Source: Rebecca billardiae RCC1528 (lineage: Eukaryota > Protista > Haptophyta). Taken from it: a stretch of 64,000 nucleotides of DNA. The notes beneath the pieces are model-generated. The model was not told the DNA's origin. It saw only the letters and a list, made by a program, of their open reading frames with translations, and ran no database searches. The DNA is taken from contig OZ251234.1 in the NCBI GenBank assembly GCA_965240325.2, forward strand, positions 62,001 to 126,000, in the 5' to 3' direction. The translations under genes were made by a program, and so were the position numbers. This document shows, piece after piece, positions 59,365 through 62,994 of the stretch (its first letter is position 1; every line of letters starts with the position of its first letter).

Positions 59365-62046
59365 TCAGCTCAGCGACGAGCCACCGTTCCGCCGCTCGGC
59401 GGCTGACAGCGGTCCGCCTGACGAGGCTGGGCCGAGCCCGCTGATGAGGGCGGCGTCGCCCGTCGCTCGGTCGGCGGCGCCGCCGCGCTCGGCGCGCTGC
59501 CGGAGGCCCTCGATCTCGGCCTGCATCGCGCGCATCGTCGCCGCGAGCTCCTTCTGCATCGCGACCATCGCGCCCATCGACGCGGCTGACTGCTCCAGCA
59601 GCTCGTGCGCGAGCGGGACCGCGCCGCCCGCCGCGTACGCCGCGCCGTGCCGCCACGCCTCCTCCGCCTCGAGCTCGGGCGCAGGGGTGGAGGTGCCCGC
59701 GTCGCTCGAGGTGGCGAGCTGCGCGTACGACATGGAGCCCGTGTACGCGAACGCGCCGGGGAACGGCGTGCGCACGCCGCCCACGCCCGTGCCGCCCGCG
59801 CGCGCGTGCTCCGGGATGTCGGAGGGCATGGAGAGCGCGCTCGCGGGCAGCGGCTGCAGCTCCGCCTCCGCCAGCTGCTCGTCGTCCGCGTCCGCGCACA
59901 GCTCGCCCAGCAGCTGCCGCGCGGTCGCGCGGCGCCAGCGCCAGCGCCACGGGCGCACGCCCGTGGTGGCGAGGACCGCCAGCCTGAGCAGCACGTGCAG
60001 CACGCCGCACACCACGAAGATCGTGCCGAGCGAGTAGCACGCCGCCGTCCACTGCGGCATCGAGAGCGCGTTGGCGCCGAGCAGCGCGAGCGAGAGACCC
60101 GGCCCGACCGGCCGCGAGAGGAGGAAGAGCGCCGCGGTCGCGCGCTTGAACTTTGCAAAGTAGAGCATCATCAGCGTCGTCGTGACGACGAACGAGGAGA
60201 AGATCACCAGGTAGATCGAGAACATCACCTTGTCCGCGAGCGTCAGCACCGACGCCTGCGGCGTCTGCTGCTTGAGCGAGACGTGGAACATCACGTTGGC
60301 CAGCAGCGTCGACGAGCACAGCGAGAAACGCATCTCGATCGCGGCGGGCGGCACGAGGTACGTGGCGAGGTTGACGAAGGAGATCACGATCGGCGCGAGG
60401 AACGCGGTGAGCACCGCCGCCACCTGCGGGAAGCGGAAGTTCACCGAGAAGTAGAACCGAGAGGCGGGGCGGCGGCCGCCCTTGCAGCCGCACGACTCCC
60501 TGTCGTACCCGCTGCCCTCGGCGTAGTCCTCGACCGGCACGCAGTCGCACATCTCCTCGAAGAGGCTGAGCCCGTCGTTCGCGCACTCGCGCACCGGGCG
60601 CAGGTAGGGCGGGCCGCACGACTCGGTCACGCGCCACGAGTAGTCCAGCAGCCGGTTGTCGATCGTGCCGGGCAGCCGGATCGAGTCGGAGAGGCCCGAG
60701 TACTCGGGCATGTGGCAGAAGATGAGCGACGGCTCGGTCGAGACGCCGTCAAACTGCTCCTCGAGGATGAGCTCGAGCGCCTCGGTGTTGAGCGGCCACC
60801 ACGTGACGTTGGTGCGGAAGAAGAAGCGGCTCTGCACGCGCACGTGGTCGACGGTCGAGCGGTTCGAGCCGACGACGGGCGAGACGGTGCGCAGCCGGTC
60901 GATGTTGACGAGCCCGAGCCCAAAGTCGGAGAGCTGCGACGCGGCGCTCGGCACGTACGGCACCCAGTGGCGCAGGTTGCCGCACTCGGTCATCCCCGGC
61001 TCCGCCAGCGCGTCGGGCGTGCGCAGCACGTCGTTCCCGTCTGCGTCCACCTCCTTGTGCAGGTACACCTCGAAGTCGCCGTAAAACGTGCCGTGCTGCA
61101 GGTCGATCTCTGCGAGGTTGAGCACGTTCACGCCAATCCCCACGCGCCGCACGGTGCCGACCGGCGGCTCGGGCTCGTCGCCGCCGCCGGCACCACCGCC
61201 GCCGCCGCCGCCGGCACCGCCGCCGCCGCCGCCGCCGCTCCCGCCGCCGCCACCGCCGCCGCCGCCGCCGCCCCCGCCGCCGCCGCCGCTGGGCGGGTCC
61301 GGCTCGGGTGGGCCCGTGCACTTGCCTGGGTTATAGAGCACCGCGCCAGGGCAGTCGGCGGCCTGCAGGCCGGCGTCGGACTCGGGCAGGCAGGTGCCCG
61401 CGGTGGCGCACCACGCGCACTTGTGCGAGTGGTTGAGCGACGGCTCGTTGAACGCCAGGCAGCCGCCGCAGTCCGTGCCGCCCTCGTTCGCCTCCTTGCA
61501 CGGGTACTCGGCCGAGATGGTGATCCGAGGCTCCGCGCGGAGCCCGTGGCTGTTGGTCGCGCCGGAGGCGAGGAGGCCGGGCGAGAGCGACACGTGGAAG
61601 CGCTCGTCCGAGCGTATGCGGTACCCCTTCAGCTGCGGCACCAGCACCACCAGCGTCTGGTTGTCCACGCGGCTGACCGAGAGCGACGAGGCGTACGTCG
61701 TGATGAGCTCGTTCCAACCCGAGTGGCCGCCGCTGCCCTCGGCCGCGCCGGCGAGCGAGTTCGCCACGTCGAGCAGGGAGATGGAGGGCGCGAAGCTCTC
61801 GTTCTCGAGCCGGATGCGCAGGTCGTGCCGCGTCGCGCCCACGGCCTCGGCCGTCACGCCACGCCGCGCGCCCACGCGGATCAGCGTGCCCGAGAGGGCC
61901 GCGGCGCGCCGCTCGACGTACGTCTGGTTGGCTGCGGAGGAGGGGCATGGGGAAGCGTCGGAGCCGTCGGGGCACGTGCGCTCGCCGAGCACGCCCGCCG
62001 CCGCGCCGAGAAGCGCCGCTGCGAGCGCTGCCCGTTGCGAGCGCAT
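59365..62046 (-). CDS. Pentameric ligand-gated ion channel subunit, Cys-loop-less (GLIC-like), with N-terminal extra domains
   Basis: Signal peptide; VGIGVNVLNLAEIDLQHGTFYGDF; WWPLNTEALELILE (Pro-loop); M1 FLAPIVIS; M2 RFSLCSSTLLANVMFH; M2-M3 loop TPQASVLTLADK. Confidence 0.85.
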   Translation of the reverse strand: MRSQRAALAAALLGAAAGVLGERTCPDGSDASPCPSSAANQTYVERRAAALSGTLIRVGARRGVTAEAVGATRHDLRIRLENESFAPSISLLDVANSLAGAAEGSGGHSGWNELITTYASSLSVSRVDNQTLVVLVPQLKGYRIRSDERFHVSLSPGLLASGATNSHGLRAEPRITISAEYPCKEANEGGTDCGGCLAFNEPSLNHSHKCAWCATAGTCLPESDAGLQAADCPGAVLYNPGKCTGPPEPDPPSGGGGGGGGGGGGGGGGSGGGGGGGAGGGGGGGAGGGDEPEPPVGTVRRVGIGVNVLNLAEIDLQHGTFYGDFEVYLHKEVDADGNDVLRTPDALAEPGMTECGNLRHWVPYVPSAASQLSDFGLGLVNIDRLRTVSPVVGSNRSTVDHVRVQSRFFFRTNVTWWPLNTEALELILEEQFDGVSTEPSLIFCHMPEYSGLSDSIRLPGTIDNRLLDYSWRVTESCGPPYLRPVRECANDGLSLFEEMCDCVPVEDYAEGSGYDRESCGCKGGRRPASRFYFSVNFRFPQVAAVLTAFLAPIVISFVNLATYLVPPAAIEMRFSLCSSTLLANVMFHVSLKQQTPQASVLTLADKVMFSIYLVIFSSFVVTTTLMMLYFAKFKRATAALFLLSRPVGPGLSLALLGANALSMPQWTAACYSLGTIFVVCGVLHVLLRLAVLATTGVRPWRWRWRRATARQLLGELCADADDEQLAEAELQPLPASALSMPSDIPEHARAGGTGVGGVRTPFPGAFAYTGSMSYAQLATSSDAGTSTPAPELEAEEAWRHGAAYAAGGAVPLAHELLEQSAASMGAMVAMQKELAATMRAMQAEIEGLRQRAERGGAADRATGDAALISGLGPASSGGPLSAAERRNGGSSLS

Positions 62047-62296
62047 GAAAAAGCCTCGGGGAAGACGAGGCAGATCTACAGCCACGCCCCGTCCTCCTTC
62101 GCCCTCCCGCTGTCCGCGCTTTGCAATTCGTCAAGTCCGGAGGATCATGTGCCTCCCGTCCGGGTATACAATCTGAAGTCTCGTCTGCTTGGGTCTTGCA
62201 TTCGGAATTCGCCGGACACCGCAGCCGCTGCACTCCCGGACTTTGGCGAGCCCCGCATTGTAGCCACGCGGCCACTCGCTTCACCAGCTCGCAAGC

Positions 62297-62994
62297 ATGG
62301 CACGCGCGCGTGACGCGCTCGGCAGCGCGCGGGCGCGCGGCCACGCGTGGCCACGGCCGCGCGGGCGTCGGCTGCGGGTGATGCTGAACGTATGCGCGCG
62401 CCACCGCACCCCGGCTGCGTCGACTGCCCCGCCGTCCGCGCCCAACAGGGTCGCGTGCGCAACAAGGTGGTCAAGCGCTCTGCGCGCCAGATCGTCGAGA
62501 AGTACTACCAGCGGCTGACGATGGACTTCCAGACGAACAAGCGCATCTGCGAGGATGTGGCTATCATCCCGTCGAAGCGCCTGAAGAACAAAATCGCTGG
62601 CTTCGCGACGGTGCGCCATGCGCCCATGCGCGTGCGATGGCGCTGGCTCGGCGGGGTGGGTAGGGTGCCCCACACGCAGCGCGCTCACGCATACCCGCCT
62701 GCGCGTGCGTGGGCCATCGCCGCGCAGCACTTGATGAAGCGCATTCAGCGCGGGCCAGTGCGCGGCATCTCGCTCAAGCTGCAGGAGGAGGAGCGCGAGC
62801 GCCGCCTCGACTTCATCCCGGACGTGTCGCAGGTGGACGTGGAGAACATCCCGGTCGATGCGGACACCAAGGCGATGCTGCGCTCGCTCGACCTGCACAA
62901 CCTGCCTGGCTTGCAGGCGGAGGTCGCGCCCATCGGCGGCGGCGGCGGCGGGGGCGGTGGCAACCGCGGCCCGCCGCACGGCGGCCGGCGATAA
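62297..62994 (+). CDS. RPS17: 40S ribosomal protein S17 (eS17); exons 62297-62299, 62449-62610, 62728-62994
   Basis: [68 protein letters not shown]. Confidence 0.97.

Follow-up and report, generated by a model that had tools for sequence, protein, structure and literature searches.

[quoted passage not shown] According to the available portion of that survey, the proline of the β6-β7 loop is the only absolutely conserved residue of the superfamily, and a physiological role is known for none of the protist pLGICs; the same portion mentions neither N-terminal or fused domains nor an extra transmembrane (TM) helix or a C-terminal extension. All known pLGICs are stated to have four TM helices (10.1101/2025.02.27.640520), and N-terminal accessory domains, as in DeCLIC, have been treated as a prokaryotic feature with a modulatory role (PMC9897478; 10.1101/2025.02.27.640520). 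The sole mention of "five TM" that we found concerns Alvinella Alpo2, where the authors explain it as an MX helix, and our search of publications for pLGICs with a fifth TM helix turned up nothing relevant.

The gene described here is a complete single-exon CDS of 893 codons plus stop on the minus strand (59365..62046, from the ORF list and translation; ATG at 62046, stop codon 59365-59367) of a 64-kb window, by which we mean the whole stretch of algal DNA analysed; all features below lie on the same strand. The ORF is colinear with three relatives and the alignment showed no frame breaks. No paralogue was found within the window, and the MMETSP and EukProt transcriptomes contain relatives of the gene. 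Its product is, we think probably, a single subunit of a very divergent pLGIC of the GLIC type that lacks the Cys-loop and has extra ectodomains, an enlarged loop C and a fifth TM helix (TM5).

We examined the relationship to pLGICs at the level of both sequence and fold. A Pfam scan of the whole protein returned nothing at E<=1, and the core reached the gathering score of neither pLGIC model, PF02931 nor PF02932, the best score being that against PF02932 (E 1.1, 9.9 bits). Pfam pLGIC models reached E<=0.001 in only 11 of the 55 family members; because Pfam misses most of them, genome surveys of channel repertoires probably under-count this family. The direct sequence match to GLIC is likewise weak (E 0.01-0.2), and a word-index homology search found three relatives only. 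A search with a profile built from the gene's clade, on the other hand, picked out 563 of 1.8 billion proteins at E<=1e-3; in the matches of 300-350 aa (E 1e-15 to 1e-19), Pfam recognises Neur_chan_memb or Neur_chan_LBD. Using hhalign, the clade aligned with nine bacterial channels of 300-350 aa from the extracellular domain (ECD) to M4 (99.8 %, E 5e-30, 269 columns), and these nine aligned with GLIC over the full length (E 5e-31), so that significant sequence homology to pLGICs is reached through a transitive chain, from the clade to the bacterial relatives to GLIC. An AF2 model of residues 296-700 (pLDDT 88.8, pTM 0.84) gave at least 500 Foldseek matches in the PDB, and all 50 of those listed are pLGICs; the best among the matches listed is GLIC (E 1.7e-17, TM 0.74), and the GABA-A receptor also matches (E 6e-16). 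Prokaryotic pLGIC clusters of the ESM-Atlas (TM 0.63-0.84) cover model residues 1-371, so that the canonical pLGIC fold ends at M4. In summary, the profiles establish homology between the core (aa 296-660) and bacterial pLGICs, and the model predicts for the core a GLIC-like fold with the superfamily's layout of a ten-strand β-sandwich ECD (aa 296-538, 60433..61161; AF2, Foldseek, hhalign) and, after it, a four-helix TM domain (TMD; M1-M4). The comparison with GLIC by fold and by profile, which the initial annotation had suggested as a check, was positive, and both the sequence profiles and the predicted fold give good support to its proposal of a Cys-loop-less pLGIC with an unusual arrangement of several domains.

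The Pro-loop motif, W417-P-L-N-T-E422 (60781..60798), contains the expected proline, P418, which is conserved in 55/55 aligned relatives within an [WYF]P[FML][DN] motif. There are no cysteines between residues 403 and 431, and the Cys-loop pair, 13 residues apart, is absent; the WPLN reading of this loop without a disulfide was thus correct. Across the family, the consensus reads [WYF]P[FML]D.Q; the clade of the gene has WPxNxE. The pair formed by the Pro-loop Asp and the pre-M1 Arg is highly conserved in pLGICs but not universal, and 29 other relatives pair a Pro-loop D with a pre-M1 R. In the gene, these two columns hold N420 and F539, and all eight members of its clade have N at the Asp column and F or T at the Arg column, and all of them (8/8) have E422 and, at 538, a basic residue in place of the canonical pair. 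Since the pair is missing at its usual positions, coupling could be altered or lost; we favour a gating-interface pair that would be re-registered in this clade, involving N420/E422 with R538/F539, rather than simply lost.

The membrane domain starts with M1 (aa 541-564, 60355..60426; model helix 246-269 and alignments), followed by the M2 pore helix (aa 567-594, 60265..60348). A HMMER alignment to GLIC sets the M2 register, with E571 at -2', M572 at -1', R573 at 0', S575 at 2', S579 at 6', L582 at 9', N584 at 11', H588 at 15', K592 at 19' and P596 at 23'. M2 therefore shows the pLGIC pattern of a basic residue at 0', small polar residues at 2' and 6' and a hydrophobic residue at 9', and the description of M2 as GLIC-like with Leu at 9' is borne out by Leu582. 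R0', H15' and P23' are each found in 54/55 relatives, and the pore-lining positions kept across the family are R0', S/T at 6', L8', a hydrophobic residue at 9' and P23'. The Met in the EMR motif does sit at -1', as had been noted, but the accompanying remark that it fits neither selectivity rule was misleading, because E571 occupies -2' exactly as in GLIC, which is cation-selective; the Met itself is not conserved, the relatives having Thr. In the anionic receptors GlyR and GABA-A, M2 carries Arg at 19'. K592 at 19' resembles this Arg, which may speak against a cation-selective pore. M3 (aa 603-630, 60157..60240; model helix 308-335) is marked by the near-invariant residues T602 (50/55) and D605 (54/55), and M4 (aa 634-660, 60067..60147; model helix 339-365) follows after a loop of three residues and aligns with GLIC M4, including its R and P.

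Beyond M4 lies an extra fifth helix, TM5 (aa 664-694, 59965..60057; model helix 369-399), which is the strongest hydrophobic segment of the protein (Kyte-Doolittle 2.35). Two helices had been assigned to this region by the initial annotation; hydropathy, the AF2 model and the GLIC M4 alignment give one, which excludes a six-helix topology and leaves five. The C-terminal tail (aa 695-893, 59368..59964) begins with the basic cluster RPWRWRWRR and, judging from the positive-inside pattern, is inferred to be cytoplasmic. A juxtamembrane block and a distal block of the tail are conserved with the relative P0001, and the tail alone had no match in Pfam. The coiled-coil tail proposed initially reduces to one short element: a heptad scan found one amphipathic, heptad-patterned helix of about 28 residues (aa 827-854, 59485..59568; a/d = M,Q,L,M,M,I,L,A), with a similar pattern in P0001 and P0002, and the rest of the tail is Ala/Gly/Ser-rich.

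Almost every long relative from eukaryotes (haptophyte, diplonemids, labyrinthulid, sponge) has TM5, whereas the nine 4-TM bacterial relatives lack it. Among the 4-TM relatives, P0101 lies in a bacterial gene context. In the tree, the nine-row 4-TM group is split from the 46 other rows by a branch with SH-aLRT 99. In a sister subfamily, Pfam detects a SAM domain after TM5 in P0065 and P0067. P0070 (Hondaea) was considered as a case of SAM directly after M4 without TM5 and was rejected; its gene model probably skips the TM5 segment, because its close relatives P0065, P0066 and P0067 carry it. We found no description of this widespread marine-eukaryote family in the literature.

In the ECD, loop C (β9-β10) is enlarged by a 43-residue insert between model strands 172-186 and 229-243 (60472..60618; AF2 model and alignment), with cysteines at 477, 488, 500, 502, 519 and 521. 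The six cysteines are conserved across the eukaryotic family, and the insert is absent in the bacterial relatives. In other pLGICs, the loop B and loop C regions form the orthosteric pocket. These two regions are the most conserved segments of the ECD here, and MPEYSGLSDSIRLPG is invariant in 4/4. The initial annotation took the protein for a chemosensory channel, a role that is putative: the strong conservation of the presumed binding loops across distant protists is more in keeping with a single, conserved stimulus than with a chemoreceptor that diversifies.

The N-terminal half of the protein is made of additional modules. The signal peptide proposed initially corresponds, by eye, to a hydrophobic N-terminus at aa 1-21 (61984..62046; MRSQR, a 15-residue hydrophobic stretch, then VLG|ER), matched by an equivalent one in P0001. 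The unknown domain noted behind it, of about 160 residues (aa 22-180, 61507..61983), is indeed Pfam-negative and unassigned to a family, and it is common to six relatives. Its AF2 model (pLDDT 79.5) had no Foldseek match in the PDB at E<=0.001; the matches are weak, generic and Ig-like (VIA, Z <=5.9), with a bacterial Ig-like match in the language-model atlas (score 0.79) as a lead only. This domain is probably an Ig-like β-sandwich with helical inserts. DeCLIC was not seen among its fold matches (Foldseek, VIA), although matching this weak does not prove that the folds differ. Next comes the PSI-type eight-cysteine module (aa 181-243, 61318..61506), whose pattern C..C....C.WC....C.P, including W212 and P221, is invariant in nine relatives, in line with the PSI-like module first noted. 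Its scores against Pfam PSI PF01437 are sub-threshold (E 0.8 for the gene, 0.12-0.004 for five relatives; 10.5-17.9 bits vs 23.1), the region gives weak fold matches to the plexin ectodomain (Foldseek, VIA), and we found no report of a PSI domain fused to a pLGIC. The poly-Gly hinge that was also proposed at the outset is the linker at aa 252-290 (61177..61293), encoded by a (GGC)37 microsatellite (TRF, period 3, 37 copies, 61179-61289); the relatives have a shorter and different linker. There are six N-x-S/T sites, two of which lie inside the PSI/ECD span (aa 205-413).

Our best inference for the function is an extracellularly gated cation channel. Five identical subunits would assemble in the plasma membrane or in some other membrane of the secretory pathway, with the ECD, the PSI module and the N-terminal domain outside the cell, as the signal peptide, the six N-x-S/T sites and the PSI cysteines suggest. 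An extracellular stimulus would act at the subunit interface beneath the cysteine-knotted loop C and open a cation-permeable pore, in which the Glu at -2' may act as it does in GLIC. TM5 would bring the chain back to the cytoplasm, and the tail of about 200 residues, with its basic cluster and heptad helix, could take the role of the animal M3-M4 intracellular domain in trafficking, anchoring or modulation.

As in GLIC and DeCLIC, the stimulus that opens the same protein might instead be protons or divalent cations rather than an organic ligand, with the enlarged loop C and the N-terminal domains being modulatory or structural. The closest solved relative is indeed the proton-gated GLIC, the nearest 4-TM relatives are bacterial, and the near-invariant His at M2 15' and conserved acidic ECD residues speak for it; in addition, Ca2+ and pH act on DeCLIC, the sole NTD-bearing channel whose structure has been solved (PMC9897478; 10.1101/2025.02.27.640520). 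However, the strongest ECD conservation falls on loops B and C rather than elsewhere, and the His at 11' of GLIC is replaced by Asn584, so we regard gating by protons or divalent cations as unlikely. Still less probable, and in our view improbable altogether, is a non-conducting or mainly adhesive or signalling receptor, in which the partner of the Ig-like and PSI modules would be a protein or a glycan and the body of the pLGIC would act as a pentameric scaffold signalling via the tail. Adhesion and guidance receptors typically carry such modules, and there is the weak plexin match; both the long tail with its conserved heptad helix and the absence of the Asp-Arg coupling pair from its usual positions would suit it; on the other hand, the pore-lining positions stay channel-like throughout the family, and it is the N-terminal domain that varies or is replaced among relatives, while the channel core is conserved. 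Finally, DNA of this GC content (~71-73 % locally) easily yields long ORFs, and the opposite strand indeed carries a 902-codon ORF across the same DNA, with several shorter shadow ORFs overlapping 59365-62046, but a chance ORF or pseudogene has a negligible probability and is for practical purposes already refuted, as homologues (E 1e-185 to 1e-85, then hundreds more by profile search) and a confident fold (AF2) were obtained for no frame but that of the minus strand, cysteines and motifs are conserved among the relatives, and the frame is intact relative to them.

Beyond the single gene, we put forward a broader interpretation tentatively, with nearly as much to be said for it as against it: that the family is an undescribed, ancient and widespread class of eukaryotic pLGICs (haptophytes, diplonemids, labyrinthulids, a calcareous sponge) that departs from the rule of four TM helices and in which TM5 and a cytoplasmic signalling tail, with SAM in some members, are an alternative to the animal M3-M4 domain and loop C is a disulfide-knotted mini-domain, and that the PSI/Ig clade with its re-registered Asp-Arg switch may couple the recognition of an extracellular macromolecule to opening. 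If true, pLGICs would have another means of acquiring an intracellular domain, through a cytoplasmic C-terminal tail conserved along with the five-helix design, and the family would be a natural test case for the effects of M4 and the lipid-facing periphery on gating. How much change a binding site and an ECD-TMD interface can absorb is a question to which the cysteine-knotted loop C and the relocated Asp/Arg pair are relevant, and a haptophyte-type surface channel with adhesion-type ectodomains may be a concrete candidate for a sensor of the environment or of other cells.

Compared with known systems, GLIC and similar short prokaryotic pLGICs are the best structural and sequence match, among the matches listed. 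GLIC shares the ECD β-sandwich with M1-M4, the lack of a Cys-loop, the 3-residue M3-M4 loop, Glu at -2', a hydrophobic 9' and Pro at 23'. However, it ends at M4, has no N-terminal domains, has a short, cysteine-free loop C, retains the Pro-loop Asp/pre-M1 Arg pair and carries its His at 11' rather than 15', whereas the algal protein adds the Ig-like and PSI modules, the 43-aa Cys-rich loop C, a β2-β3 insert carrying C355, TM5 and the tail of ~200 aa. DeCLIC and other NTD-bearing prokaryotic pLGICs are alike in having an accessory extracellular domain N-terminal to the ECD, but DeCLIC is prokaryotic with four TM helices, and the algal protein is eukaryotic, with its Ig-like and PSI modules on a poly-Gly tether. 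The Cys-less eukaryotic "Pro-loop receptors", as described in PMC4795631, similarly lack the Cys-loop cysteines and keep the invariant proline. The PSI domains of plexins, semaphorins and integrins have the same eight-cysteine spacing with a C-x-W-C core, and the module here differs in scoring below the Pfam threshold. Metazoan Cys-loop receptors (nAChR, GABA-A, GlyR) share the overall fold, but they have the Cys-loop disulfide that the algal protein lacks, and their intracellular domain lies between M3 and M4, where the algal loop has three residues and the cytoplasmic part is reached via TM5. The loop C disulfide of nAChR alpha and the animal intracellular appendage nevertheless have functional parallels in the algal protein, with six cysteines in a 43-aa insert in place of the vicinal Cys pair.

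The gene lies on the minus strand, in a 906-codon ORF (59365–62085) whose first ATG, at 62046, gives, from a single exon, a protein of 893 amino acids (aa). At the G+C content of the surrounding DNA (~71–73%), ORF length alone is poor evidence for a gene, and an unsupported 902-codon ORF, rich in Arg, Ala and Gly, runs antisense across the whole gene (59605–62313, plus strand); homologues and a confident fold were found for the minus-strand frame only, not for this shadow ORF. The protein consists of a signal-peptide-like segment (aa 1–21), a domain without a family match (aa 22–180), an eight-Cys module of the PSI type (aa 183–243), a poly-Gly stretch (aa 252–290), a large conserved core (aa 296–700) and an Ala/Gly/Ser-rich tail (aa 701–893), and all six of its N-x-S/T sites are N-terminal to the membrane region. 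An imperfect trinucleotide microsatellite, (GGC)37 (61179–61289, 85% matches), codes for the poly-Gly stretch, and strains are likely to differ in its length. The closest relative, P0001, has a far shorter Gly/Asp linker. The adjoining ORF (62347–62994, plus strand) contains two blocks ([18 protein letters not shown] and [26 protein letters not shown]) which we take to be ribosomal protein eS17; since an unrelated stretch separates them, an intron is suggested, and this is consistent with a eukaryotic nuclear genome.

A Pfam scan of the protein gave no match at E ≤ 1, and phmmer against the PDB gave weak matches (E 0.06–0.2) to the transmembrane region of GLIC, the proton-gated channel of Gloeobacter violaceus. 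A word-index search found three relatives, P0001 (69% identity over the core) and P0002 and P0003 (~41%), and a four-sequence core profile matched only pLGICs (pentameric ligand-gated ion channels) in the PDB (E ~0.01), aligning aa 638–660 with M4 of GLIC. Since the family scans had left the protein open, an exhaustive profile search was run, which yielded 563 proteins at E ≤ 1e-3, 48 of them at E ≤ 1e-30. Its matches of 300–350 aa (E 1e-15 to 1e-19) bear Pfam Neur_chan_memb or Neur_chan_LBD, above the gathering threshold in the case of P0085, and one short match has a bacterial gene context (Lon, the planctomycete cytochrome PSCyt1 and a bacterial-type AspRS as neighbours). With hhalign, the algal clade (the gene and its PSI/Ig-bearing relatives) aligned to nine short proteins from beta1 to M4 (99.8% probability, E 5e-30, 269 columns), and the same nine aligned to GLIC over their full length (E 5e-31). 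Hence, sequence homology of the core to GLIC-type channels is established transitively, while the Pfam pLGIC models reach E ≤ 0.001 in only 11 of the 55 family members.

The AlphaFold2 model of aa 296–700, built with the 55-sequence alignment (A3), has a beta-sandwich with five helices after it (pLDDT 88.8, pTM 0.84). The pLGIC fold proposed in the initial annotation was recovered by Foldseek against the PDB, which gave at least 500 matches at E ≤ 0.001; all 50 rows listed were pLGICs, and the best match among those listed was GLIC (E 1.7e-17, TM 0.74 by target, whole chain), with GABA-A receptors next. Matches in the ESM-Atlas were prokaryotic pLGIC clusters (TM 0.63–0.84, rmsd 2.3–3.5 Å) spanning model residues 1–371, that is, to the end of M4. 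The identification of the protein as a pLGIC is thus secure. The initial annotation was largely right, including the WPLN Pro-loop and the missing Cys-loop, but its helix count and its reading of the selectivity filter are corrected below.

P418 of the Pro-loop is the sole invariant column across the 55 relatives, and as no cysteines flank it, the protein is Cys-loop-less. The loop reads W-P-L-N-T-E, against a family consensus of [WYF]-P-[FML]-D-x-Q. The M2 register was taken from the GLIC alignment and cross-checked via named GLIC mutants among the Foldseek matches and an aligned T25′A chain; it places E571 at −2′, M572 at −1′, R573 at 0′, S575 at 2′, S579 at 6′, L582 at 9′, H588 at 15′, K592 at 19′ and P596 at 23′. 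A Met at −1′ had been said to fit neither selectivity rule, but with Glu at −2′, E-M-R is the GLIC arrangement; this Glu is invariant in the clade, while the Met is replaced by Thr in relatives. The Glu points to cation selectivity. Anionic GlyR and GABA-A receptors have Arg at 19′, so Lys at this position adds some doubt. R0′, H15′ and P23′ are near-invariant (54/55 each). The His at 15′, shared with the bacterial four-helix group, is family-specific; GLIC has Asn at 15′ and a functional His at 11′.

The M3–M4 loop has three residues, and M4 (634–660) is followed by a strongly hydrophobic segment (664–694, TM5), which has the highest Kyte–Doolittle value in the protein (2.35) and is also a helix in the model. 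Five membrane helices were therefore found, M1–M4 and one extra, instead of the six initially annotated. A hydrophobic helix 4–20 residues past M4 occurs in nearly all long relatives, whereas the short bacterial relatives stop at M4, and a maximum-likelihood tree computed with all 55 rows and 390 columns, none omitted, separates the nine-row four-helix group from the other 46 rows by a branch with an SH-aLRT of 99. Because the basic cluster RPWRWRWRR directly follows TM5, the positive-inside rule would place the tail in the cytoplasm. In a sister subfamily (P0065, P0067 and P0070; Hondaea fermentalgiana GBG32399.1 and relatives), TM5 is followed by a SAM domain, an intracellular module (24.2 bits, above threshold, in P0065; 19.9 bits, below threshold, in P0067). 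Close relatives of P0070 have TM5, but its own gene model skips that segment, and an intron was probably mis-called there. The tail gave no family match; the closest relatives share its juxtamembrane block and a heptad-patterned helix of 28 residues (827–854).

In the extracellular domain (ECD), loop C (beta9–beta10) is enlarged by an insert of 43 residues containing Cys 477, 488, 500, 502, 519 and 521, which is modelled less confidently (pLDDT ~65). Four to six of these cysteines and the pair C355/C444 are conserved through the eukaryotic family, whereas the bacterial relatives lack the insert. In all eight members of the gene's clade, the canonical Pro-loop Asp is Asn and the pre-M1 Arg is Phe or Thr, with a Glu two positions downstream of the Asn (E422) and, one position upstream of the Phe or Thr, a basic residue (R538); 29 other relatives retain the Asp with Arg pair. 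The change may represent a re-registered charge pair.

Across nine relatives, the cysteines of the PSI-type module follow one invariant pattern; the Pfam PSI score is below threshold. The domain at aa 22–180 is modelled as a beta-sandwich with helices (pLDDT 79.5) and gave generic Ig-like fold matches (Z ≤ 5.9) and weak plexin PSI-IPT matches. The N-region varies in the wider family, other members having ~400 unrelated residues, one with a weak Bmp/PBP match. In the diplonemid-type branch, comprising P0015 (Diplonema ambulator) and ~15 relatives (830–1210 aa), ~400–700 residues precede the channel core, and the N-region of P0015 weakly matches Bmp/PnrA-like periplasmic-binding proteins (E 8e-4); here the same five-helix channel may be joined to another kind of sensor domain.

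Named members, always annotated as hypothetical or uncharacterized, come from Haptolina (MMETSP), D. ambulator, D. papillatum, Hemistasia, the labyrinthulid Hondaea and the calcareous sponge Sycon ciliatum. The sponge member (P0017/P0163, XP_065198598.1, 'uncharacterized'), a 474-aa five-helix protein with 8/8 ECD cysteines, is of interest for early pLGIC history in animals. We infer that the protein is a stimulus-gated channel at the cell surface, probably permeable to cations, whose tail TM5 would bring into the cytoplasm. In a full-text literature search, neither a fifth TM helix nor a PSI fusion nor a Cys-rich loop C was seen reported for pLGICs, which is not proof of absence, and no earlier description of this sizeable family was found. 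Cys-less pLGICs are known in protists, haptophytes and green algae among them (PMC4795631; PMC11085791), and in prokaryotic channels N-terminal domains have been described, e.g., in DeCLIC; the four-helix transmembrane domain has been called universal (PMC9897478; 10.1101/2025.02.27.640520).
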